Positions 3,152 through 20,124 of a DNA stretch of 51,269 nt are shown piece by piece (positions within the stretch are counted from its first letter, which is position 1; each line of letters starts with the position of its first letter). Origin of the DNA: Ascoidea asiatica JCM 7603 (lineage: Eukaryota > Fungi > Ascomycota); contig BCKQ01000006.1 of the NCBI GenBank assembly GCA_001600695.1, positions 992,864 through 1,044,132 of the forward strand. The letters are read 5' to 3'. Both the position numbers and the translations under genes were made by a program. The notes under the pieces were generated by a model. The model was not told where the DNA came from. It saw only the letters and a list, made by a program, of their open reading frames with translations, and searched no databases.

Positions 3152-3919
3152 CAGAATGTAGAATATGATAAATGATTATTTGAAATTTATGATTTATAAT
3201 TTATGATTTATAATTTGCAATTTACAATTTGAGAACTATTCACAAATAAATGTTTATATTGATATTGATATTGATATTGGTTTTGCTATTGATATTGAAA
3301 TTGAATTGGGATTGAATATATGAAATATTAATATCAATAACATTAACAACATTAATAACAGTAGCGTCAACAGTAGCGTTACCATTTACAATACTGCAAT
3401 TGTAGTATTCTGCCGTACTCTTTAATGTTGTACAGTACAGTACTATCACTACTACTACTATTACCGCTGCCATTACCACCTTTACCACTGATATTACCAG
3501 CTACAACACCACTAACACTGCTAATACTAATACTAACACTAACAAACTGCCTTCAATCCCACAGTTACCATACGTAATGAAATACTCAAAACTAACAGCC
3601 TCCAAGTCAGGTGTCTGGTCACGTTATACGTTATAGTCTGAGGACGTGTCACGAGACACTATCTCAACCAGATCTCTCAAGATCTCAAATTTCCGTCTTT
3701 TTTTCAATCGAAATTTCTTCTTCCGTTTGAAGATTTTACTGCAACGGATTGAGATCATGTGTGATAGATTTCAGGGAATATTTGAATCATCAGAAGAAGC
3801 ACAAGAAGCAAGAACAACAGAAGTGAGATCAGAACAAGTATCAATATAAGAAAGAACAATCCAAATAAAGCAAGAGGCCATCAATTATTTTCAAACATCT
3901 GGTTCAACTACTTTTGTAT

Positions 3920-5161
3920 ATGTATCAAGATATGACTGTGTCTTCTTTTGGATCCCCAAATCAAAACACCATACATGAGAAAAAAGATTCTTCAACTGCT
4001 CAAGATAATTCTGATCAGAAAGCTAGTCAACTTGAAGAGGACGAAGATATACCAATTCTAATTACTGATCAAGAGATAATAAATTGTTCTTTTTCGAATT
4101 GGTACCCTATTTTCAAATCTCATTCTCCGAAAGCTCATATACTAAGACCTATACCGAAATCTTTCATAGATTATTTATTTCAAGATGGTATTACTTTACC
4201 TAATGAATATTATAATTCTACAACTGGAAAAAACTCAAACATAAATAAAAATGAATGGGAAGAAAATTCAGACTATCAATTATCCTCTAATATTTCTAAT
4301 AATCTCAATAATCTAGATCCAACTGAAAAATTCACTAATTTTCATAATCAAATAAAATTAATCCTTATTAATAATGGTCCAATTTTCCCAAAACTTAACT
4401 GGTCAGCTCCAAAGGATGCTAAATGGATTTTACCTGATTCAATTTTAAAATGCTATACAACTTCCGATGTTTATATGCTTTTAAAGTCCTCTGATCATAT
4501 ATTATTTGACTTAACCAAAATGCTAAAAGTTTATGATACCACTACTACCACTACTACCGCTACTGCTATTACTACTGTTAGTGCGGATGAAAATAATAAT
4601 AATAAAAACTTCGAGTTTGAACTAGTTTTAAAGGAATGGTTTAATATAAATCCTTCTTTAGAGTTTAGAGTTTTTATTAAAAATAAAAAAATTATCGCCA
4701 TTTCTCAAAAAGATTCAAATTATTATCAATTTTTACAAAAAATAGCTTCCAAAATTAAATTAAAAATCTTTACATTTTTCAATAATATTGTAAAACAAAA
4801 TTTTATTAATAATAATTATATAATTGATCTATATTTACCGATTTCAACTGAAAAAATTTATATTATAGATTTTAATCCTTTTTCAAAACAATCAGATTCT
4901 TTATTGTTCAATTGGAATGAACTAATTAACTTTTCTTCAAATGATGATTTGGATTTTCAATTAAGATTTGTAGATAAATTTAATTCAAAATCCTTTTTAG
5001 TAAAACCTTATTCCGAAAGTCAAGTCCCTAGAGATGTTGTAGATGCTTCAATGGATGCTTCAGCTATGGTAGATCTACTCAAACAGTGGCAAAACTCCTT
5101 AGACAAAAATAATGATCAACTTTCATCAGATTCAGATACTGATTCATATACAAAATCTTAA
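3920..5161 (+). CDS. CDC123: Cdc123/D123 ATP-grasp eIF2 assembly factor
   Basis: CSFSNWYP, FPKLNWSAPKDAKWI, LLKSSD, EFRVFIK..IIAISQ, IIDFNPF motifs; first ATG at 3920 (alternative 3932); the ORF track starts at a TTG. Confidence 0.95.
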   Translation: MYQDMTVSSFGSPNQNTIHEKKDSSTAQDNSDQKASQLEEDEDIPILITDQEIINCSFSNWYPIFKSHSPKAHILRPIPKSFIDYLFQDGITLPNEYYNSTTGKNSNINKNEWEENSDYQLSSNISNNLNNLDPTEKFTNFHNQIKLILINNGPIFPKLNWSAPKDAKWILPDSILKCYTTSDVYMLLKSSDHILFDLTKMLKVYDTTTTTTTATAITTVSADENNNNKNFEFELVLKEWFNINPSLEFRVFIKNKKIIAISQKDSNYYQFLQKIASKIKLKIFTFFNNIVKQNFINNNYIIDLYLPISTEKIYIIDFNPFSKQSDSLLFNWNELINFSSNDDLDFQLRFVDKFNSKSFLVKPYSESQVPRDVVDASMDASAMVDLLKQWQNSLDKNNDQLSSDSDTDSYTKS

Positions 5162-5207
5162 ACAAAATTCAAATAATTCTTTCTAGTTTTTCTAAAATGT
5201 TATTGAG

Positions 5208-7558
5208 TTAATCTTCAAAACTATTACATTTTGAGATTGGAAATTCTTCTTCTTGTCCTTTCAACGGTCCTTCTGTATAATAAAGTTTTGGTCTATATCC
5301 AGGTTCTTGATTCATAACACTTGAACTGCGAAATTTAGAAATCAAGTTTTCTTTCCCTTGTCTATATCATCACATTATTCTCATTACAAGTTTCATAATT
5401 TTGTTAGTTTTCCACATTCTCTAATACTTTAATTTTATTCACACCTCAAATTTCAAAATAATATACTTACACATTTGCATATGAAATATCACAAATTTTT
5501 TCTGAATTAAACCTATTCCATTTAGTTCCCACTCTTGCTTTAGCAAAAGTTATAATGTGCTCTGGCGAGATAAAAGATATAAATGCATATCCAACGCTTT
5601 TAAAAATTATTAGTAATTAGTTTTTTTCTAAAAAAAATTCAAAAAAAAAGAATTTTATTTATTAGCTCAAAAAATACGTACTTGCAATGATTAATGAAAT
5701 CAATTCTTAAATCTTGTTATTTAATTTTTTCAAAAAAGTGAAATTTTGTTAGTAAATCTTTTTCATTTTTTCATTTCTTTAGTAGCACAAAGTAATATTT
5801 ACAAAGGAAATCATAGGTGTATTCATTAGTTTCATCAATATATTCTTTCAACATTTGCTGATCTACTTTATTTGGAATATTTCTTATCATTAATGTTGTT
5901 CTTTTATCTTGACCTCTTGCAATTCTATCCAAATCAACAATGTTTTTACCTGGAACTGATCCACATCTCATTGAAACTTGTTTAGTTCCATTTATAAAAT
6001 TTGTTTGGTAATTTGGATGGAAAGCATTATTTTGTAAACTATAAAATCTAGATTTAGATCCAGATGGAGCAGGGGTAATAGTGGACCTTACAGATTTAAA
6101 GTTAATCAATTGAGGTGAATATTCATTTCTAGTAATTCTATTATAGCCAATTGTTTTATAACGAGAACTATTAACACTTTTTTTTTCATTGGTAAGCTGA
6201 AAAAGTAACTTAATATCAGTGGAAAGAATTAGCATTGATCCATTAATAATGCATCCATTTAACTTGGCTATGGATTTCTGAACAGCTAAAACATTGTAAT
6301 AACTACAAAATATCAATGTCTCTGAAATATTAGAAGATTCTAATTTACTAAAAAATTTCAAATCCTCAATGCTACTCATCTTTGTCTTAATCAGATATAA
6401 AAGCTTGTTACTTTGAACTCCCTCAATTACATTAATATAAACATTAGAACTAGATTCGTTTAATCCAGAAAGAGTAAGTCCATTTTGTAAAATAACTTGG
6501 TTTAATGAACATGAATACTCAACTGAAAAATTAATATCAGTTTCATAACTATAATCCTCAAGAATATTTTTAAATGCCTTCTCTGCATGCCGAATATCAA
6601 ACCAACCAACAATAATCTCAAGAAAATAATCATTAAATTCCGAAAATTCAATAATGGCAACTTCTCCATAACTTGTGCATAATTGTTTAAGTAACTCTAT
6701 ATTTGAACCTATAGGGAAATATTTCAATAAAAGAACCCTACTGGTAATTTCATTGTTATTAGATGATGGTTGAAGTAGTGAATTGTGTGTGAAGTTAAAA
6801 ATCTTTTTATTTTTTAGATTAGGATTTTGTTCAAGTGTTTGAATTTTAAGTGCTTTAAAATTATTTTTCATGTTATGATTTTGATTTTGATTTTGAAGTT
6901 GCATTTGAGGTTGAATTTGATTTTGAGTAAAAATTTGATTCAGATTTTGACTTTGATTTTGTATCTGGCTCTGATTTCCGACCATAGCTAATTTACTATT
7001 TATAATGGAAGATTCATTAATTGCTCTTTGGTCATTCATAGTGGTACCTAGTAAATTATCCGAGGTTTCAGTTTTATTTAGTGTGATCATTGAAGGCTGT
7101 TGAACATTGGAGGGATAAAAATGTGATTGTTGCTGATTTACATCAACATGGTCTGTCAAAAAATTTGGGTATAATTCCGAATATAGATTTGTATATTCAT
7201 CAGCATATGTATTGGATTGATCTAGAATAGGAAATGATTGTTTTTTATTTTTTGAAAGATTCTGATATTTACTAGGAATGATGTCATTTTCAAATGAATT
7301 TATACCATCAGACTGATCTTCGTGCTTTACAAAGTACAATTTGTTATCTAAATTGGAATTTGCATGGAATGGAAAAGGGGCCACTGAAGATTGATTAGAA
7401 ATATCTGTAAATGGAAGCTTTCTTTGGTTAAAAAATGAAGTTTGAAGTGAATTAATGCTATTAGTTGTATTATTATTCTCATTATGTTGAATGTTGGAGT
7501 TTTGAAGTAAATAATTGGTATTTTCGGGCTGACAAAAATTAGGAGGTGAAATATTCAT
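5208..7558 (-). CDS. mei2: Mei2-like RNA-binding protein, 4 exons (7558-5803, 5712-5682, 5596-5471, 5361-5208), 688 aa
   Basis: Splicing three GT..AG introns restores the Mei2-specific C-terminal RRM3: DKRTTLMIRNIPNK...TYDFL/YLRIDFINHC/NVGYAFISF...KWNRFNSEKICDISYAN/VQGKENLISKFRSSSVM...YRPKLYY; two degenerate N-terminal RRMs (SRVLLLKYFP..YGEV..WFDIRHAEKA; YYNV.A..SIAKLNG); exon phases are consistent. Confidence 0.9.
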
Positions 7559-8626
7559 TTTAGTGAAAATTAAGATTTAAATGTTGAAAAGAGAAACAAT
7601 TAGCAGGGAGGTAATTAAGAAAAGATTCACCTTTAATAACTTGGCAAAAATATCTGTTGTTTTTTCTAAATAAAATTCAAATCACTTCTTGAGAATTTTT
7701 AAATGTGATTAAAACCTAAATATAATAAAGATAGATTAATTTTTGACAATTACTAGGAAAAATAAAATATTATAAGAATAAAAAAAGGTTTGATCTAAAC
7801 AAAAAGATAGAAAATTTAAAAAGCAATTGCAATTAATTTCTGATAAAAACCAAAAAAAAGCTTGTTTTGAAAGAAAAAAATAAGGAAAAAAAAATAAAAG
7901 AACCAAAAATAGAAAAAAAATCTGCCAAATAAAAAGAGATTTTCAGTTTTAATATTTTGATAGCAATTTGAATGGAACGAAAGAATGTTAATGATGTAAG
8001 GATATTGATTATATTTTTTACTTAATTTATCTGTTGGATTAAAGTAATAAATAGTAAATAATATAAGTTTAGTTGTTAACTCATACAGTATAATAAAAAA
8101 TAAAGATAAAAGAGAAAATTACACTACATTTTCTCCTTAAAAAAAATATCGCTGAAATGAAATTCATAGTTTCTAATTCTATATAAAAGCAAACGACCAA
8201 AAGAAGTTCACAAACAAATTTTTTCTTGGGAACTTTCAAAAATCAAGCAGAAAAAAAGAAGCATTTCCATTTCCATTCCATTTGTATTTGTATTTGTATT
8301 TGTGTATTTACTGAATTTTTTGTTGGCAGAGTTGCGGCAAGTTTTCGCAGTGGAGGTGCTGAAAGAGAATTCGGTTCGTGAGTTTTGGTTCTTCTGCAGA
8401 AGAGAGCCCAGAAAAATGGACTCAGATTACGATTTGAGATTAAAAGAAAATTCAGAGAGTAATATATATACATTTATAAGGATACAGAGCTAAAGCAGCG
8501 ATATTTAGCGAATGAAGACTATGAGATAGGAATATAAAAAATGGAATTTTAAATAGGAATATAAATAGGAATATAAATGGAATTATAAATGAAAATGCAA
8601 TTTCAATTAGCAAGTTACTTATTCAT

Positions 8627-10417
8627 CTAATAATATTGCCATACAGTACTTGGTAAAACCTCATTCATTAGATGCCAATGTTTTAGTGCAATTTTATCTT
8701 GAAATTCATTTAAACGATTGTTATCTTCAGTTAAAATCATGCCTGGTTTTATTTTTGAAATATCAACTCTTCTATATTGTAAAGTATTGAATATATGAAA
8801 TCTTAAGTTTGAGCCATTACATTCTTCTAAAGAAACACTTTTGAAAGACTGAACTTGATAATTATCTTTGTTTCTGCAAAACATTACATAATTATTTGGA
8901 TCATCATAATCAACAATATGAGAACTAGCATTTTTGAGAATTGCATCATGAAATATTTCACAATTATAAACTTCAGAAATAGTTGAGTATACAGATCTTA
9001 TAGCTAAAGAATTCAAAGCTCCATAAATATTAACAACTAAAATTCCATCGGATTTTAAAACATTTTTTTTTATTTTTTCCCAGGCTTCAATAGAATATAA
9101 ATTTGAAGGTACTAACCCTCCAGAAAAAAAATCATGAATAACCAAAGAATATTTTTTTAATAAATTCAAGGAATTAATCCAAACATTTGCATCTTGAATT
9201 ATAATTTCATGTAATTCAGAAGATTTTAAACCAAAATAATCTCTTGAAATTTCGTAAATGACAGGATCAAGCTCTAAAATACTTGTTTCAAAATTTGAGT
9301 CAATAAAACCATTTGCAGCGGAACCAATACCTAACCCGAGTAAAATTACATTTTTTTCTTTAAAAGGAGGATCGATAATCTTTACAGCTTCTTGTAATAT
9401 AAAAGTTGAATAAATTGAATCACCTAATTTAGTTTCATTATTCTCTTGATTTAACCAAAGACCACCTAATAAAGAGTGATCGACTCTCAAATATCTCATT
9501 GGTTGATCATAACGAGATAAGTTTCCTGGATAAAGATCACCAACAACAACTTGACCAGTTATCGAACTTGTAGAATTATAAATAATTAAATCATCAAAAT
9601 GGTCTTTTATTGGATGAACTGGAAATTTCTGATTGGAAAACAATTTTAAAGGTTTTTGAAAAAAAAAATGAGAAGAAAAAATTAAAATAGTAAGTAATAT
9701 AGTTGAAAATTTGTCAAAATTTAAATCTAATTTTTTTGAACTTTTTTTTGATTTAAACATAAAAATTGAAACTGAAATTGAATGAATTATCAGTAAGGTA
9801 AAGGATATCTTGAAAAGATCAAAACTATTTAATAAGCGAAATAATAAGAAATACAATAGTACAGCTGAAAAAAATTGAATCAAGTTCTTTTGGGATTGAA
9901 TTCCGTTTTGAAATTTAGATAAATATTTAAAAGCAAATATGTATGATGGGATTAATCCAAAAATAAAAGTGAAAATAACACAACCATAGATGATTTGATC
10001 AGTAGAAAAAAAGGAAAGGATTCTATTTACTGAAGATACATTATTTAGAGTTACAACAGAAATTTGATAGGTAATATTTTTTGAATATAGTTGCGAGATT
10101 ATTAAGGTAAATGGAATAGGAGTTAAAAAGTCAATAGAGTTTTTGATATCAAGACTTTCTCTTTTAACTTTTGAATCATTATTCTCATTATTGCTATCAT
10201 TATTTTTTACCATTTTAATTGAATGTCTTGGATATAGAATCACATAAAGAATATAAACAAAAACAAAAGCTAAAGGTATATAAGCTGGAGATATTATTTC
10301 CGAATAATGGCCAAACAAAGATTTTAAAGAATTAGCTTGGATCATTGTTAAAGAGAATAAACTTGATAAAACTAAAGTCTCAGACATAATTTGCCTTGAA
10401 GATTGTTTTGAAAACAT
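8627..10417 (-). CDS. Membrane-anchored class I SAM-dependent methyltransferase / spermidine-synthase-like protein
   Basis: Several N-terminal TM segments, then SSITGQVVV, YLRVDHSLLGGLW, YSTFILQEAV, Gly-rich ILLGLGIGS, ELDPVIY, IIIQDA, IHDFFSGG, DGILVVN. Confidence 0.8.
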   Translation of the reverse strand: MFSKQSSRQIMSETLVLSSLFSLTMIQANSLKSLFGHYSEIISPAYIPLAFVFVYILYVILYPRHSIKMVKNNDSNNENNDSKVKRESLDIKNSIDFLTPIPFTLIISQLYSKNITYQISVVTLNNVSSVNRILSFFSTDQIIYGCVIFTFIFGLIPSYIFAFKYLSKFQNGIQSQKNLIQFFSAVLLYFLLFRLLNSFDLFKISFTLLIIHSISVSIFMFKSKKSSKKLDLNFDKFSTILLTILIFSSHFFFQKPLKLFSNQKFPVHPIKDHFDDLIIYNSTSSITGQVVVGDLYPGNLSRYDQPMRYLRVDHSLLGGLWLNQENNETKLGDSIYSTFILQEAVKIIDPPFKEKNVILLGLGIGSAANGFIDSNFETSILELDPVIYEISRDYFGLKSSELHEIIIQDANVWINSLNLLKKYSLVIHDFFSGGLVPSNLYSIEAWEKIKKNVLKSDGILVVNIYGALNSLAIRSVYSTISEVYNCEIFHDAILKNASSHIVDYDDPNNYVMFCRNKDNYQVQSFKSVSLEECNGSNLRFHIFNTLQYRRVDISKIKPGMILTEDNNRLNEFQDKIALKHWHLMNEVLPSTVWQYY

Positions 10418-11512
10418 TTTTTTCAGAATAGCTTTCTTTTAATTTTAATCAGAATTTAAATAACTGAATGAATGTATGTGCTTAATTGAAAAATAGCACA
10501 ATTTTTTATAACAGCAAATTTTTTTTTCATAAAAATTAATATTGAATTGAAAACTTTCTAAATAAAAAGACAAAAAAAAAAGTGAAATACATTTCAATTT
10601 AAATGATATTTTTCGAAGGCATTTTATTCTAGAAATATAATTATTAACCGGTTTTTTTCGAGATGAATTTCATTGATGTTGTAGTATTATTGTTCATTTA
10701 GTTGATAATTAAGTATTGCTTATTGATGCAATAGGAGAAATGTACAGCACTGTGAAAATATATCTATTGAAAACACATTCTTCTATTAATCAAGACGTGT
10801 GAATAGTTCAGAAGTGATTTAAAACATCTTTTTTTTATCTGAAACAAACCATTTTTTAAGTCCCAATAAATATTACGTAATCACCACATAAGCATTTTTG
10901 ATAACAATGATCAATAAAACTAAAGAAAGTGAACCAAAAAAACGGCGCTCGAAGTTTGAGATCCCATAACTCTGGTTCTATGAAAACCCAAAAGATCACG
11001 TAATCGGCCACTTAAAAGTTATTTGAAGCAGTACGCAAAATGTACTCCGCGATAGTACCTAAAGCGCGGAATTCTCGCCAGATTTGAAAATGATTCCAGT
11101 GCTATCAGTTCTTTCGGACGTTCCTGGTGAAGTTATTGCACAGAAGTATGCTCAGATAGATAGCGTGAAGAAAGAGAGAAAGAAGAATAAGATGATCCGA
11201 AAATACCAACTGAGACAAAATACAGCGAGGAGCAAGAGGTAAAAAAAGAAAAAGAAATAGAAACAGGAAATACAGTAACATTAACTAGAAATGAACATGA
11301 AAATGGAAATTGGAATAGACTTAGATAGCTATATAAGATCTTACTGAAGCTGAATGGGTTAATATTCCTAGGCTATTCTACTGGAGTCGTGATTTTTTGC
11401 TCATTATTATCTATAGTGTAAATGATGCTTGATCTCTTATACTGAAATCCTCTTTGGGAAACAATATATTGCTTTCTACTTTCATGTAAATTAGAAATAA
11501 GGTATTATATTA

Positions 11513-11617
11513 GATAAGGAATTGTTTACTATTGTATATCAATACTCATTAATATAATATGACAAAGTGATTGTAAAGATAATATGATAATTTAGTTGAT
11601 AACTATGCATATATAAA
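11513..11617 (+). promoter_or_regulatory. Cluster of four GATAA elements plus TATA box upstream of the oxygenase-like gene
   Basis: GATAAG 11513, GATAA 11578, 11586, 11598, TATATAAA 11610-11617; clustered GATAA sites are the known nitrogen-catabolite-repression elements (Gln3/Gat1). Confidence 0.5.
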
Positions 11618-11772
11618 TCTAGCTTCAATTCTTCTCTTTTTTTTCAAAAATATAATGTTCGATCAATAACAATCAATTAACTGCTCGATCAATAACTCAA
11701 TTATTTAACAATTGGTAAAAATTTCAACTGCATTTCATTTAGACTCATATTAATCATCTTTACATAAAAAAA

Positions 11773-12774
11773 ATGGCTGATACTTCCGAACTTCCTTTAA
11801 CTTTACCATCTTCTTGGTTCACTAGTAATAAAATTTTAGATATTATAAGAAGTGAAGTTTTATTGAAAGAATGGTTATATATAGCTCCAATCACTCGTTT
11901 TTACAAGTCTAACGGCTCGGAATATGTTCAATATTGTTATGCTAATAAACCGTGTTTTGTTCTTACTGGTGATTTTTCTTCTTCAACAACTTCAATCAAT
12001 GCATATCTCGGTGATTATGAAAAAGAAATTTTGCCTTTGAATAGTGATGAATTGAAAATTAATAAAAAACTTCAATCTCTTCCACAAATTTCTACTTATA
12101 TTACAAAAACTGGTTTAGTTTTCATCAATTATCAACAAAATCCTTCAGTTTCTTTAGAAGACCATTTTAGTAAAGATTTATTCAAGTTAACTGATAATGT
12201 AAACTTTTCCAAATTAAAATATAAAAGAACTGTTGTTTATGAAACAAATTACAATTTTCTTACTTTTCTTGATGGTTACCAAGAATGTCTTCATTGTCAA
12301 TATACCCACCCGGGTTTAGCAAAAGCTTATGATATGACTTCTTATGAAGTTCAAAATTATAAAAATTTCTCTCAGCATAAAACTTGTCCACAAACTAATG
12401 CTAAAGCCGGTGAAGGTGATGGGTTATTTCTTTATTTTTTTCCAATTTCAACTTTAAGTTTATATGGCGGTGGAATGAATTGTTTTAGAGTTATTCCTAT
12501 AAGTAAAAACCGTTCAAAAATGGAAATCGATTTTTACTTTGATGAATCTATTGTAACTGATAAAACAAAAATGGGTGTCGAGTTTGAAAAATATTTTAAT
12601 TTTGTTAGACAAGTTCAAACTGAAGATCAATATCTTTGTGAAGATACTCAAAAAAACCTTCAAATTGGTCTTTATAAAGTCGGTTTTTTGAATCCTGTCA
12701 AGGAAAGTGGTGTTCTCTTTTATCAAAATTTGATTCGTGAAAGAGTAGTTAACTTTGTTAAAACGGCTGCATAA
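11773..12774 (+). CDS. Choline-monooxygenase-like ring-hydroxylating oxygenase alpha subunit lacking the Rieske cluster motif
   Basis: LPSSWF, KEWLY, GLVFIN, TNYNF...YQECLHCQYTHPGL, YFFP, EDQYLCEDTQKNL..GLY..G.L.P..E.GV..YQ match the catalytic domain; no CxH..CxxH. Confidence 0.8.
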   Translation: MADTSELPLTLPSSWFTSNKILDIIRSEVLLKEWLYIAPITRFYKSNGSEYVQYCYANKPCFVLTGDFSSSTTSINAYLGDYEKEILPLNSDELKINKKLQSLPQISTYITKTGLVFINYQQNPSVSLEDHFSKDLFKLTDNVNFSKLKYKRTVVYETNYNFLTFLDGYQECLHCQYTHPGLAKAYDMTSYEVQNYKNFSQHKTCPQTNAKAGEGDGLFLYFFPISTLSLYGGGMNCFRVIPISKNRSKMEIDFYFDESIVTDKTKMGVEFEKYFNFVRQVQTEDQYLCEDTQKNLQIGLYKVGFLNPVKESGVLFYQNLIRERVVNFVKTAA

Positions 12775-13154
12775 TTAATCTTTCAACTTTATTTTTTTTC
12801 GTCTTCCTTTTTACTTAATATTTAAATTTAGACCCATATTCAATAACTAAAATCAAAACTAAAATTCAATTTCTTTTTATAATCTTCATAAATTATCTTT
12901 TATATCCATTAATATATGCTAACTATACACTTTTATTCATTTATGGCTCTAAGTTACAATGTAAAATATGACGTCTAAAATTTAGTTTAATCTTTCGATA
13001 ATTTAAAAGCCGACATGCAGCTCCGTAAATAGTATAACTAGCAATATCAGTGGCGGTATTGTTTATACTTTTACCAAGCAGCTTTAATATTATTTGAAAT
13101 AAAATTTTTTAATTGATTTAAAATTTTATGAAATCTTTAATCAATTACTTAAAA

Positions 13155-16100
13155 ATGAGTCTTTTAGATAATATTATTTCTGTTGGAGACAATTTCCCAA
13201 ATATTACAGAAGTTAATCAAACTACAATCTTGAATTCGACTCAAGATGAGTCCTTTCTTTCATTGACAGATGATATAATCCTTTCAATTGATTATAGATT
13301 CAATAAGTTTAGCGCTTGTTGCTTAGATATAAGCTCAAGAAGATTATATGTTTTAGAAAACTCTTCTATAGTTTTAACTCAAAATGATTACTTAGGAATA
13401 GCTGAAGCATTTTTCGAAAATAGTATGTAAATAACTTGCTATTACTTTTTTATTACTGAGGCTAAAAAACTGTACTTTTTTTATGATCTTGGGATAACTA
13501 ACAATACTTTCAAACCAAAAGTTGTGATTCAATTCAAGCCTACTGTTGTTCTCATAGCTACATGTCTCGATCCAGTATTTTGTGAAATAGCAAGCAAAGC
13601 TGGTAAGCTTCACACCCACTATACCTTTTTGAATATATTTTTTATGCTTAACTAACTTAGCTTAAAGCAGGAATTTTTCACTGACAAATCAACATTTTTT
13701 TTAATTAACTGAAATAGCTGGCAAATTCAATTATTCTTTAAAGATTACACCCAATCACCATTATGCAAAATCTGAGGTACTTAAATTATTTGAAGAAATC
13801 CTTGATGAAGCAAAAGGAGAATGCGATGAAATATCTAATGAAAATTCATTAACTACATCAAAGTTGAAATCTTATTTTGCTATGCTTTCAAATAATCCAG
13901 ACTACTCGGTGGCTGTATGTATATAACCTGATGAAATTATTCATTATTTGCTTTTATTTTTCAAGCGCTAGTAACTAATTATTCTATTTTTCTAAAAAAG
14001 CTTGGTTGTATTGGCTCCTTATTGTCTATGCTTCAAACCCATATTTTTTTTCAGAATTCCGAAATTAAAGCATTGAGCTTGATCTCCACTTTTGAAACAT
14101 TGATTTTGTAAGTTTTACAGTCACTATTTTTTACCTACGATATCAGATAACAAATATTCTAACATATTATTCAAGGGAAGATTATATGTTCATCGATCAA
14201 AGTACATTATTTGCACTTCAAATTTTTTCAAATCCAAATTACACTCAAATTACTTCGAAAAAAGATAGCAAAGTAACTGTTTTCGGTACATAATACTTTT
14301 TTTTTTAAACATATATTTTATATCAAAAATACTAATGCCATCAATTAGATCTTTTGAATTTTACCGGTTCAGTTCCAGGGGCTAAGATGCTAAGAAATTG
14401 GCTAACAAGACCATTGTCAAATCTTCGGTTAATTGAAGAGAGACATAAATCAATTGAGATTTTTCTGCGATCAAATAATTCCGAAACGGTGAAAAAATTG
14501 ATGAGTTCAATCAAAAATTTGGGAATTATTTCAAAAAACATACTAACTTTACATGCTGGAAAAGCACAACTAAGAACCTGGGAGTCGATTTTAAACTTCT
14601 TAAATCATTCAATAGAAATTTATGAAACTCTCAACTTTTTACATGGCAGGGAAGAGATTGAAGTTATTCAAGCTATTATTTCATTGGCTGATGTTGAAAC
14701 GATCAAAGATCTGGTTGAAACTCTTATTTCAACAATAGATTTTGAAGAATCAATTGAATCAGGGAAAATTACTATTGCCAATAAAGTTCATCCTAGATTA
14801 GATGAGCTAAGAAATATCTATAATGAAATGGATGATATTCTAAATGATGTTGCCTTGGAGGTTTGTAAAGTATTTCCAAAAGCTTTTTCGGACTTGATTA
14901 ATGCCGTTTATATACCACAGCTAGGATATCTTATTTCTGTTTTATATGAAGATAACAATTATTTTGACTATATATTTGATGATTGGGAAGAAATTTTTCG
15001 AACTACCACCACAGTATATTTTAAGACTGATGCTACAAAAAAAATGGATGATTATTATGGTGATATTTATAGTTTGATGTGTGATTGCGAAATTGAGATT
15101 TTATATGAACTGCAAATGGTTATTATTGAACAAGAAAAGCTTTTATGCGAGCTTAGCACTTTGTTTGCTTCTTTAGATTGGTACGACTCACACTCAACTT
15201 CTTTTGAAAAAAAAACAAATATATCCTACTAACAGAATTATCTTTATCGTAGTTTTCTTTCTCTATCTAAGGCTTCTGAAATTTACAATTATTGCAAACC
15301 AGAAATGAGTAATAACATCATATTAGATATTAAAGATGGAAGGTAAGAATATTCTTTTACTTTTTAGTTATATTTGAAAGCACATTATAAGTTTATTATA
15401 TTAACTGGCTTTTTTTTAATACTAAGACATCCACTATATGAAACTGTCGTTCCAACATTTGTTCCGAATCAAACTTATTTAAATGGTTCCACTAGTGGTG
15501 ATGATAGGTGGGCAGAAACAGGACACGAAAGAATCTTGTTAGTAACAGGTGCTAATTTCTCTGGAAAATCTGTTTATTTAACACAGTGTGCTTTAATTGT
15601 CTTCCTTGCTCATATAGGTTGCTTCGTTCCCGCTTCTAAAGCTATTATTGGGTTAACAGATAAAATATTGACAAGACTGGTATCAAAGGAAAGTGTTTCA
15701 AATGCACAAAGCACTTTTTTGATTGATTCTCAGCAAATTTCCAAATCTCTGAATTTGATTACCGAAAGAAGCCTGCTTATTATTGACGAATTTGGTAAAG
15801 GAACAGATATAATAGGTATGTTAAATACTTTTACACATTGAAACTATTTTTGCTTTATTACTAACGTTTTCTTAGATGGACCTTCTTTATTTGGTTCTGT
15901 TCTGAACTATCTTTCGAAATTGAAAAATTGTCCCAGAACTGTTGCTTCCACCCACTTTCACGGTAAGAACACCTTCTTTTAAAAAAGGGAATATATTGAA
16001 GAATAGTTTGCTTTACTAACCTTTTTAAAAAGAAATTTTTGCCCCTAGTATTATGGGAAATATCAATGGTATTCATCATTACCAAATGGAAATTTTGATA

Positions 16101-16579
16101 TCCTTTGATCAAAGCGATCAAAATGAATCTACTGAAAATATAACATATTTGTATCATTTGAAAGAAGGTACAATGACAAATAGTTTTGGAATTTAGTAAG
16201 TATACTGAAATTTAGGTCTTTTTTTAAATCTTATTTTAGTTTTTGTTCTAACGTTTATTTTAGTTGTGCAAAAATGTGTGGAATAAAACACACAATAGTC
16301 AGAAGAGCACAAGATATATTCACAATGATTGAAAATGGAAAAGATCCGGTCAAAAAATGTTCAGTACTCACAGAAAAAGAAGCTAATTCTCTCAATGTTG
16401 CAGTAAGTAATATATTCATAAATTTTAGCTGCATGTGCTTTATAAAACCTCTGACTACTAACAATAAATTCAAGAAAGTAATTTCGAAAAATTTTTTAAA
16501 ATGGGATTTTTCAAAAGAAGATCATAAATCAGATATACGCATCAAGGAAAAATTGATTCAATTGACAAATGAAAAATAA
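13155..16579 (+). CDS. MSH5: Meiotic MutS homolog Msh5, 12 exons (13155-13422, 13522-13602, 13718-13914, 14001-14107, 14176-14285, 14349-15180, 15253-15342, 15427-15815, 15876-15962, 16033-16195, 16264-16402, 16475-16579), 855 aa
   Basis: All 11 introns are GT..AG with branch-like motifs and consistent phases; motifs YMFIDQSTLFALQIF, VYIPQLGYL, DGRHPL, Walker A TGANFSGKS, ESVS..QSTFLID, IDEFGKGT, STHFHE, SFGIYCAKMCGI; upstream in-frame ATG also at 13128. Confidence 0.95.
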
Positions 16580-16619
16580 TTTCCAGAAAAAGTTAGTGGC
16601 TATATATAACATTAAACAT

Positions 16620-18314
16620 TTAGGCAAATTTAATAGATCTTGAAAGATTCTTTTTGATACCAGTTTTCTCACCTTCATATGACCCTTGTTGCCCAGTGTA
16701 AACAGCACGAACACTTTTAAGTTTTTTCTGAGCTTTTTCATATTTCTTTCTCTTTTTAACTCTTGCATTCCTATTAATTTTATCACGTTTAGGTGTAAGA
16801 CCCTTATTCTTAAGGATTTGATAATTTATTGCTCTTTTTCCATTTTCTCCTACCATTTCTTGCAATTCAGATAATTTACCCTCTTTAGCGGCCTTCACAG
16901 CCTGAATATGAGCTGTTTTCCTTTGTTCTTTCTTTTCCATTCTTGCCTTTTTAACTAATTCATAAGCAGAATTGGCAGAATTTATATTATTTGCTTGTTT
17001 TTCATCATCAGAATTAAAATCATCTCCATCAAGATCGGCGCCTACACTACTATCTTTCTGACCACGTTTACGAGCTTCTTCAGTCAATCTTTGTTGCCTT
17101 TCAAAGAAACGCTCTTTATAAGGTAGATCCAAATCCCCAGTAAATTTAATATCTCTTTTGTTTGCTTGTTGGTCAATTTTAGAAGTATAGAAACGTAAAG
17201 ATCGCTTATGAGCTTTCTTTTCTTCTGCATCAACATCTGCCATTTCACCTTCCACGAAATCTTGCTGATATACTTGTCTTTTTTGGATTACACGTTTCTT
17301 ATTTATATCAAATTCTTCATCGGACTCATCGGCTGTAGTAATATCTTGACTGAGTTTAGAAGCCGAAGAACTAGAAGAAATTTCCTTATTATTTATTTCT
17401 GTATCTTCAATTTCTTTATCTGAATTTTCTATTTCTTTATTTGAATTTTCCAAGTTTTCATCATCAGTTTTTTTATTTAAAGTTATAAATTCATTGCTAT
17501 CTTTTACGATAGTAGTATCTTGATTTTGAATAAATGAGTATTCATCAGGCAACTGATCTGCTTGTTTCCATACTTCTCTGGCTTTTAATATGCACTCCAT
17601 TATGGGATGATTTTTCATTGTAAAGTTTTCACCTGTTGATAAATTAGAAATAAATAATGCAAAATAATTACTTATTGAGCCAAGATAAGCAGATAAAGCA
17701 GTAAATTTAACATCCAGTATTTCATTATTTTCTTTTTTTGAAATTAACCAACTGAGTTTGGGCATAAGGGATGTTAGTTCAGTAGACATAGGTAAATATT
17801 CAGGGAAATTTGATTGAATTACTTTCAATCTTTCTGATTTATCTAATGATGCAAGATTAGTCCAAGGAACATTATCTTCAGGTTCTGTTAATTTAGTTGA
17901 TATTTCAGGAACTTTTTCTGACCATCCTGTTTCTTCTTCATCAAAATAATCTTGTATATTAAGGTTTTGCCTGTGAGACTTTTCAAGACGAATTGCTTCA
18001 TCAACCATTCTTTCAGCATCTTCTGGATCTTCAATATCCTCATCATCTTCTGCTCCATAATAATTCTGTTTTCCTCCCCAATTATCAAGGTCTTCTTCAT
18101 TATTTATATCGTCTTGATTTTCAGTGAAAAATTCTCGATCATTCTCATTTTCATCTTCAAATTTAAAATTTTCATTATCAGATTGACTCGAATCAGAGTC
18201 ATAATCATTTCTCATTACTTCTTCATCGGAACTTTGTTGTAATAATTCATTTTGACTTACATCATCTTCAGAATCGGATAAAGGGTCATCTAACATTAAC
18301 TCTTTTTTATCCAT
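16620..18314 (-). CDS. SAS10: SSU processome component Sas10/Utp3
   Basis: Acidic N-terminus, HPIME..L, SLRFYTSKIDQ, GDLDLPYKER, C-terminal KRAINYQILKNKGLTPKR..RNARVKKRKKYEKA..YEGEKTGIK. Confidence 0.96.
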   Translation of the reverse strand: MDKKELMLDDPLSDSEDDVSQNELLQQSSDEEVMRNDYDSDSSQSDNENFKFEDENENDREFFTENQDDINNEEDLDNWGGKQNYYGAEDDEDIEDPEDAERMVDEAIRLEKSHRQNLNIQDYFDEEETGWSEKVPEISTKLTEPEDNVPWTNLASLDKSERLKVIQSNFPEYLPMSTELTSLMPKLSWLISKKENNEILDVKFTALSAYLGSISNYFALFISNLSTGENFTMKNHPIMECILKAREVWKQADQLPDEYSFIQNQDTTIVKDSNEFITLNKKTDDENLENSNKEIENSDKEIEDTEINNKEISSSSSASKLSQDITTADESDEEFDINKKRVIQKRQVYQQDFVEGEMADVDAEEKKAHKRSLRFYTSKIDQQANKRDIKFTGDLDLPYKERFFERQQRLTEEARKRGQKDSSVGADLDGDDFNSDDEKQANNINSANSAYELVKKARMEKKEQRKTAHIQAVKAAKEGKLSELQEMVGENGKRAINYQILKNKGLTPKRDKINRNARVKKRKKYEKAQKKLKSVRAVYTGQQGSYEGEKTGIKKNLSRSIKFA

Positions 18315-18637: not shown

Positions 18638-18924
18638 GCTTTAAGTACCATTAGTTTGGAAACGAAAAAAAAATGAGATGTGGGTGCAGGATGTTAGAGC
18701 CTGGAAGTAAGCAAAGAGAATAAAATAAACTTACTAGGAGTGAAATCCAAAGTTGAAAGATCAAATAAATTGAAGGTAAATATTAACAGATGAAATTAAA
18801 TAATAAAATTATATAATAAAAGTAAGTGATAAGATTGAATAATAAAGTAAAGTCATTGTTTGGGTAATTAACAACTGTAAATACTAATACTTCGGTGGTG
18901 AAATATAGAAAGAATAATCTTACA

Positions 18925-20124
18925 ATGGCGGGTACACAACGTCTTGATGGGTTGTCAAATAGACTTTCTTCAGGTCGAGTATCTTTTGGTACACCAAAGC
19001 CAAAAGCAGGGTTGAAATTTAAACCAAAAGCAGTTTCTAGGAGGACAAAAGAAGAAAGGGCAGCAGATGCACCTGTTTTGAGAGAAGTAGATGATAATGG
19101 TCGAGGAAGAGGTCGAGGCAGAGGTAGAGGTGGTTTAAGAGGTCGAGGTAGAGGTAGAGGAGGACGAGGACGTGGTAATTTAGCTGGAACTCATTTAATT
19201 TCTCTGGGACCTTTATCTAATACAGAAGTTGTTGATATACGTAAGAATGGAAGAAATGGTAGAAGTATTAAATCAGAAGCTCATCGGAATATAAATGATG
19301 AATTATTAGATTTACAAGGTTTAGATGATGCAAAAAGAATTAATATGAATGAAGAATATGAATTAGATAAAGGGACTACTGAATTATTTCCATTAAGAGC
19401 TATGAATGGAAATAGTAAGAAAGCAGAAAGTATTAACTCATCAGATAGTAGTACTTCATCAAAAAGTAATTCACCGGAATTAAGTGATAGTGAAGAAGAA
19501 TATATATCAGTAAAAGAAGAAAGTGAAGATATTTCATCAAAATCACCTTCAATTAAAAATGAAGATGAATTAAATAATCAATTATTAAAAGATGAAAAAC
19601 ATAAAAATTTTAAAAAAAAATCAAAGAAAAAAGTAAAAATTGAAAGTAAACTGATTCATGAATATAATTCGGATGATGAAGAAATATGTATACTTAAAGA
19701 TCATTTTAAAATTATGAGAATAGTAGAAAATCAAGCTAAAAGAATAAACAATAATGAAACAAATAAATTAATAGTATTTCAACTTCCTAAATTATTACCA
19801 AATTTTCAAACAGAAGAAGATAAAATTGAAAATGAAAATAGTAAAAAAAATGAAAATGGCGAAAAAAATGAAAATGGTGAAAATAGTGACAATTTGAAAC
19901 CAAAAATAAGAATCAAAGATCCACCAAATGGAATAATAGGAAAATTAAGATATCATAAATCAGGAAAGGTTAGCATGAAAATTGGAGAAGTTGTAATGGA
20001 TATTTCTAGCGGAGCAAATACAAATTTTCTACAAGATGCTATTCTAGTTGACACTAGCAATCATAATGTCTATCAGATGGGTCAGATAGAAGATAAAATT
20101 GTCGCCAATCCTAAGTTATTCTGA
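18925..20124 (+). CDS. RPC53: RNA polymerase III subunit C53 (RPC4)
   Basis: RL.SL.. start, LKFKPKAVSRRTKEER, LFPLR, FQLP..LP, GIIGKLRYHKSGKVSMKIGEVVMDISSGA..FLQD; ATG at 18925; RG-repeat tract near the N-terminus. Confidence 0.95.
   Translation: MAGTQRLDGLSNRLSSGRVSFGTPKPKAGLKFKPKAVSRRTKEERAADAPVLREVDDNGRGRGRGRGRGGLRGRGRGRGGRGRGNLAGTHLISLGPLSNTEVVDIRKNGRNGRSIKSEAHRNINDELLDLQGLDDAKRINMNEEYELDKGTTELFPLRAMNGNSKKAESINSSDSSTSSKSNSPELSDSEEEYISVKEESEDISSKSPSIKNEDELNNQLLKDEKHKNFKKKSKKKVKIESKLIHEYNSDDEEICILKDHFKIMRIVENQAKRINNNETNKLIVFQLPKLLPNFQTEEDKIENENSKKNENGEKNENGENSDNLKPKIRIKDPPNGIIGKLRYHKSGKVSMKIGEVVMDISSGANTNFLQDAILVDTSNHNVYQMGQIEDKIVANPKLF

Follow-up and report, generated by a model that had tools for sequence, protein, structure and literature searches.

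The window analysed here, a stretch of 51,269 nucleotides (nt) from contig BCKQ01000006.1 of the budding yeast Ascoidea asiatica JCM 7603 (positions 992,864 to 1,044,132), carries on its minus strand a predicted gene for a Mei2-type protein with three RNA recognition motifs (RRMs). This gene is probably the single-copy Mei2 ortholog of an Ascoideales yeast, with three ancestral introns to be removed from its transcript and a part for its product in the switch from growth to meiosis. Sequence comparison, exon by exon, confirms the predicted gene as a real, intact, three-intron member of the family. The result is a sound annotation of a further Mei2 family gene; the presence of such genes in budding yeasts is already known.

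Gene model and evidence for splicing

The gene and its parts are as follows, residue equivalents being those of Schizosaccharomyces pombe Mei2.

5208..7558, minus strand: MEI2-like gene from ATG to TAA, four exons and three introns, 688 codons plus stop
5803..7558, minus strand: exon 1, 1756 nt, coding for residues 1-270 (the N/Q-rich N-terminus), RRM1 and RRM2, the linker, and the initial third of RRM3
5713..5802, minus strand: intron 1, 90 nt, GTAAAT...TACTAAC (5754-5748)...AAG, phase 1, interrupting the Y629-equivalent codon
5682..5712, minus strand: exon 2, a 31-nt microexon coding for (Y)LRIDFINHC(N) and holding the equivalents of Y629 and R631
5597..5681, minus strand: intron 2, 85 nt, GTACGT...TACTAAT...AAG, phase 2, interrupting the N639-equivalent codon
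5471..5596, minus strand: exon 3, 126 nt, coding for the core of RRM3 with its RNP1 (VGYAFISF, with the F644 equivalent)
5362..5470, minus strand: intron 3, 109 nt, GTAAGT...AACTAAC (5409-5403)...TAG
5208..5361, minus strand: exon 4, 154 nt with the TAA counted in, coding for the alphaC/betaC extension of RRM3, with the K690 equivalent kept

An earlier, sequence-only reading of this DNA had proposed these coordinates, the strand, the three introns and a product of 688 amino acids, all of which hold when the exons are read one by one. The exon lengths total 2067 nt, corresponding to 688 amino acids and TAA, and the codons split at the three junctions read Tyr, Asn and Val; exon 1 ends with ...YDFL and the first base of the Tyr codon. 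Intron 3 contains a GAG after its branch site and ahead of the TAG. Since use of this GAG as acceptor would bring a stop after three codons, the TAG is taken as the working acceptor. The longest unspliced open reading frame (ORF; 5771..7558, minus strand) is 595 amino acids long and stops 10 codons into intron 1. It was said to break off within a domain, and it does: its last 34 residues match positions 1-34 of the 97 positions of the Pfam RRM_2 profile (PF04059, 38.8 bits), where the match ends. The three-intron structure provides a corrected gene model for the A. asiatica genome, where an intron-naive call would deliver the 595-residue protein with a broken RRM3.

All searches of the spliced model were run with the individual exons. 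The restoration of a Mei2-type RRM3 by splicing, another element of the sequence-only reading, is borne out by exons that are collinear with both the Pfam profile and a solved structure. Against RRM_2, exon 1 matches profile positions 1-33 (36.1 bits, E 7.5e-9) and exon 3 positions 45-85 (62 bits, E 6.6e-17), both above the cut-off of 25 bits and in the same order. Among solved structures, the matches are exclusively to RRM3 chains of S. pombe Mei2. On chain 6yyl_A, exon 1 (residues 537-585) aligns to positions 12-60 (E 7e-12), exon 3 to positions 72-112 with 33 of 41 residues identical to S. pombe Mei2 (E 1.5e-17), and exon 4 to positions 114-155 (E 9e-11). The 11-residue gap left between exons 1 and 3 on this chain is exon 2 together with its two split codons, and tblastn aligns exon 2 to the segment LRIDFVNKC of S. 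pombe Mei2 across a gap of 30 codons. The full-length proteins of Lipomyces japonicus and Trichomonascus are likewise collinear with exons 1, 3 and 4 in tblastn, at 65-88% identity.

Counting of splice motifs was dropped as a means of validating the introns: the pattern GTAAGT-N(20-50)-TACTAAC occurs 59 times genome-wide and 50 times in the reversed control, and is not distinctive in a genome of 26% GC. The support for splicing therefore comes from homology.

RNA-binding domains and linker

The predicted RRM3, with its alphaN and alphaC/betaC extensions, is covered by the exon alignments to 6yyl_A. In S. pombe Mei2, the RRM3 residues contacting the UUC core of meiRNA are N582, Y629, R631, F644, S677, Y678, N680, I681 and K690 (Shen et al. 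2022, PMC9486875). According to the alignments, eight of these nine are identical in the Ascoidea protein, all except I681, the equivalent of which is a Val issued from the codon split between exons 3 and 4. The Y629 equivalent is also encoded by a split codon, between exons 1 and 2, while the R631 equivalent lies inside the 31-nt microexon. F644 is among the RRM3 residues required for the meiotic function in S. pombe (PMC9486875). Because the contact residues are kept, binding of RRM3 to U-rich RNA containing UUC can reasonably be inferred.

The N-terminal half is more divergent. A Pfam search of this part detects no RRM_1; the two N-terminal RRMs assigned by the sequence-only reading nonetheless find support in the structural model.

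6515..6736, minus strand: divergent RRM1 (residues 275-348), from an AlphaFold2 (AF2) model with predicted local distance difference test (pLDDT) values >90, Foldseek, and tblastn to RRM1 of S. pombe Mei2 and of Lipomyces
6221..6445, minus strand: divergent RRM2 (residues 372-446), from AF2, Foldseek and tblastn, followed by a helix extending to about residue 466
6074..6133, minus strand: linker islands TRNEYSPQL (residues 476-484) and KSVRSTIT (residues 488-495), opposite the Pat1-site regions of S438 and T527 in S. pombe Mei2

The AF2 model, computed for residues 272-468 from a 65-row alignment, folds as two tandem RRMs with a pLDDT of 91 and a predicted template modelling (pTM) score of 0.83. 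Both units match the tandem RRM1-2 structures of HuR, Sxl, HuD, PABP and U2AF65 in Foldseek (E 5e-9 to 1e-7). Furthermore, residues 57-357 of S. pombe Mei2 (E 1.5e-8) and 89-427 of the Lipomyces protein (E 2e-10) align to window positions 7276..6221. Upstream of the RRMs, residues 1-270 are rich in Asn, Gln and Ser and have no homologs; this N-terminus is N/Q-rich and disordered, and the linker is Ser/Thr-rich. Two CTG codons, 206 and 389, both outside RRM3, may be read as Ser in the Ascoidea lineage.

The resemblance of TRNEYSPQL to a Pat1 target region, evoked in the sequence-only reading, survives in part. In a MAFFT alignment with 12 homologs, in which the linker is softly aligned, ITRNEYSPQ stands opposite LGRTESSPA of the S438 region, with R, E, S and P in common, and KSVRSTIT stands opposite MRRSLTV of the T527 region. 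The phospho-acceptors themselves align to other residues, S438 to Tyr and T527 to Ile, with Ser and Thr present near the aligned positions. The likeness is thus a short aligned island, and a weak one.

Orthology, gene order and intron history

The A. asiatica genome (20.3 Mb, 71 contigs, about 26% GC) returns a single locus in a whole-genome RRM_2 search, the MEI2-like gene. Its surroundings in the window are the following.

1558-2634: Metallophos gene, the window order being Metallophos, D123, MEI2
3914..5161, plus strand: CDC123/D123, the convergent neighbour, with its stop 46 nt from the MEI2 stop; synteny anchor
16623-18314: Sas10, beyond about 9 kb of other genes from MEI2
18895-20121: Rpc4, after Sas10, with orientations matching those in the compared yeasts

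In Saccharomycopsis crataegensis, a convergent D123 comes next after the Mei2-like gene, and Metallophos lies beyond it. The order is Rpc4, Sas10, Mei2-like, D123 in Ogataea philodendri, and Sas10, Mei2-like, D123, TCP1 in a yeast resembling Blastobotrys adeninivorans (hereafter Blastobotrys-like). MEI2 is part of an Rpc4-Sas10-MEI2-CDC123 block that is conserved in three or more orders of budding yeasts. The RRM3 core, the contact residues, the three-RRM architecture, the single copy and the synteny identify the predicted protein as a genuine Mei2 ortholog, membership of the clade being assigned from per-exon identities, single copy and synteny.

Compared with S. pombe Mei2 (6YYL, 7EIO, 7EIU, 7DUS), the Ascoidea protein presents the same three-RRM architecture, alignable RRM1 and RRM2 regions (E 1.5e-8) and a Mei2-type RRM3 with alphaN and alphaC/betaC; it differs by the three introns of its gene, by its N/Q-rich N-terminus and by the lack of the RKLRS...IGLFPP tail. 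The annotated Mei2-like proteins of budding yeasts belong to the same family, share the gene order (D123 convergent downstream, Sas10 and Rpc4 upstream) and are 60-88% identical in the RRM3 exons. For exon 3, identity reaches 77-88% with Lipomyces, Trichomonascus and S. pombe, as compared to 67% with S. crataegensis of the same order, which suggests that evolutionary rates are unequal within Ascoideales.

The introns also have counterparts elsewhere. The Blastobotrys-like gene has two introns that coincide exactly in position and phase with introns 1 and 2, and the same 31-nt microexon in between. It differs from the Ascoidea gene by two additional introns (one following TRW, the other VMDQ), by the absence of intron 3, by a conserved tail motif and by a GC content of 47%. 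The annotated gene of L. japonicus harbours an intron at the position of intron 2, another within 1 nt of intron 3, and both extra positions of the Blastobotrys type. Conversely, the Saccharomycopsis and Ogataea genes are intronless, gene length being three times the protein length plus the stop, whereas the Ascoidea gene keeps its three introns. As their positions are common to the Blastobotrys-like yeast or to Lipomyces, the three short introns in the 3' part of the Ascoidea gene would be ancestral and retained. Such 3'-end introns, kept in some orders, are unusual among yeasts that have lost most of theirs.

The automatic call of the Blastobotrys-like gene, P0004 (332 amino acids, L003:4001-5510), ends with ...YDFL-CK, that is, by read-through into the first RRM3 intron; the true gene runs on through four introns to a ...VGLYPPQD tail. 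Intron-naive gene calls seem to truncate MEI2 systematically. In L. japonicus MU969601.1 (L011:5433-5486), the intron annotated between I690 and Q691 reads TAAGTT...ATACT and not GT...AG: either its boundary is off by a base or two, probably the case, or the intron is non-canonical.

The closest named relative is Ascoidea rubescens, with 54% identity to the Nop14 of the window, the next named species reaching 43%. No Mei2-type protein of A. rubescens is found among the proteins returned by two protein searches; its ortholog may be mis-annotated (intron-split), fall outside the length window, or be lost.

MEI2 and Sas10, neighbours in Ogataea and in the Blastobotrys-like yeast, are separated in the window by about 9 kb of additional genes (7559-16622). 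This interval comprises a 596-residue ORF without Pfam family (8627-10417, minus strand), a homolog of the alpha subunit of ring-hydroxylating oxygenases (11773-12774) and further ORFs (14354-15841).

Role and partners in budding yeasts

Mei2 had been presented as an oddity in a budding yeast, a premise contradicted by annotated orthologs across many budding-yeast lineages. The RRM3 region of Trichomonascus retrieves 688 proteins at E 1e-20 or better. The best 120 of these 688, which were inspected, include annotated Mei2-type proteins in Lipomyces, Dipodascopsis, Myxozyma, Limtongia, Tortispora and Trichomonascus, as well as in Yarrowia (“Meiosis protein”), Wickerhamiella sorbophila (“Meiosis protein mei2”), O. 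philodendri and S. crataegensis. Named examples are DASC09_059390 of S. crataegensis, OGAPHI_005172 of O. philodendri and OPOL_74879 (MEI2) of Ogataea polymorpha. The existing annotations of Mei2-type proteins extend over five or more orders of budding yeasts.

Orthologs are hence widespread, and none was found to be functionally characterised: a search of the literature for functional work on budding-yeast MEI2 returned a single expression datum. In O. polymorpha, OPOL_74879_Spom_MEI2 is upregulated (log2 3.29) upon RME1 overexpression, together with RIM4, IME2 and MUM2, and IME1 has no ortholog in this species (Hanson et al. 2017, PMC5720833). Since IME1 is absent where checked in these lineages, the Mei2 family is a plausible candidate for the route by which the majority of budding yeasts go into meiosis. 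This question is already approachable in Ogataea or Yarrowia, and is not newly raised by the Ascoidea locus.

In the proposed mechanism, the mature mRNA would result from removal of the three short ancestral introns clustered in the part coding for the C-terminal RRM. RRM3 would then bind U-rich RNA with UUC, as in S. pombe Mei2, and the protein would act post-transcriptionally to direct starved cells from growth to sexual development and meiosis, in a lineage placed among budding yeasts where IME1 is not expected. A role in sexual development or meiotic entry appears the most likely by analogy: meiosis depends on Mei2-like genes in S. pombe and Arabidopsis, and on Csa2 in Cryptococcus (published work).

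The partners known from S. pombe would set this switch apart. A single YTH locus is present in the genome (C2:1092786-1093202, inside a 713-residue open frame). S. cerevisiae Mrb1/Pho92 comes nearest to it (117 bits), with human YTHDF1-3 also among the best PDB matches, while none of the Mmi1 chains in the PDB reaches E 0.001; this one YTH gene is therefore assigned, by sequence similarity, to the Pho92/YTHDF type and not to the Mmi1 type. The ERH (Erh1) family PF01133 has no match in the genome, nor in the control genomes, and a small, intron-split gene could escape such a search. Two MT-A70 loci (C15:46305-46793 and C14:254217-254555) are taken to be Ime4- and Kar4-like. As only Pho92-type YTH and Ime4/Kar4-type methyltransferase homologs are seen, the switch would proceed without a sequestration step of the Mmi1/Erh1 type. 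A writer-reader pair for N6-methyladenosine (m6A) coexists with MEI2 in this genome.

Several observations weigh against the meiotic role or against efficient production of the protein. A promoter scan of positions 7559-8626 for Rme1, URS1, middle sporulation element (MSE), TR-box/HMG and pheromone response element (PRE) sites yields one MSE-like heptamer and nothing above background. Plant and Cryptococcus Mei2-like proteins have non-meiotic roles as well (published work), and the Pat1 acceptor positions S438 and T527 are, in the alignment, occupied by residues other than Ser or Thr. The donor of intron 1, GTAAAT, lacks the G at position +5 and two of the acceptors are AAG, so that splicing could be inefficient. 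Finally, the protein ends 8 residues after ...EEEFP, and no match resembling the RKLRS...IGLFPP C-terminal tail is detected in window positions 5000-8000. This tail is seen in Schizosaccharomyces, Lipomyces, Trichomonascus and the Blastobotrys-like yeast; as it seems to be short also in the proteins of Ogataea, Saccharomycopsis and Yarrowia, it does not define the family.

Part of these points would fit a true Mei2 ortholog whose main job is not meiotic entry but the starvation- or TOR-linked, post-transcriptional regulation of the passage from growth to differentiation, for example by translational repression in the cytosol or in processing bodies (P-bodies). Meiosis would then be triggered by machinery of the Ime2/Ime4-Pho92/Ndt80 type. 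Published precedents are the plant Mei2-like proteins in vegetative development, Csa2 in basidium formation of Cryptococcus, and the cytosolic P-body functions that S. pombe Mei2 exerts through RRM1. The Pho92-type reader and the two MT-A70 loci kept in the genome, and the lack of conservation of the Pat1 acceptor residues, point in the same direction. However, in O. polymorpha, the one budding yeast for which data exist, MEI2 is induced together with sporulation genes, and the Ascoidea RRM3 preserves the residues, F644 among them, on which meiotic function depends in S. pombe. Such a non-meiotic main function is considered rather unlikely.

A further possibility assigns a regulatory part to splicing itself, which would gate functional Mei2. 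The latter would be the switch by which budding yeasts ancestrally enter meiosis, independent of IME1 and operating without Mmi1. The introns are found only in the RRM3-coding 3' end, flanking a microexon with two RNA-contact residues, and their signals are weak: the GTAAAT donor, the AAG acceptors and the GAG that has to be skipped. Were this true, retention of any one intron would give a protein without RRM3. This combination is judged doubtful.

The complete S. pombe circuit, to which the sequence-only reading refers, with the Pat1/Ran1 kinase, Mei2, a meiRNA-like decoy RNA and Mmi1, finds no support beyond Mei2 itself and is very improbable. The linker islands do align to the S438 and T527 regions and the RNA-contact surface of RRM3 is conserved, but the acceptor positions are Tyr and Ile, and the look-up for Mmi1 that this reading had suggested uncovers only the YTH gene closest to Pho92/Mrb1 (117 bits), with no Mmi1 chain at the above threshold; the ERH search, although devoid of a positive control, gives no match either.

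Equally hard to credit is a decaying gene, or one expressed only as the unspliced 595-residue product without a working RRM3, as might be read from the weak GTAAAT donor, the two AAG acceptors and the lost tail motif, since the four exons stay in frame and are 65-88% identical to distant orthologs, only one of the nine contact residues differs, branch sites are intact and intron positions are conserved across orders.

Apart from MEI2, two near-identical intron-like strings, each with GTAAGT at one end and TACTAAC at the other, are found repeatedly in the genome (C2:2501807, C10:603705, C18:124290, C18:264683, C18:304192 and C20:153007; also C1:981215, C1:1030124 and C3:1516307). Such strings might represent introns, belonging either to a mobile element or to a gene family present in many copies.

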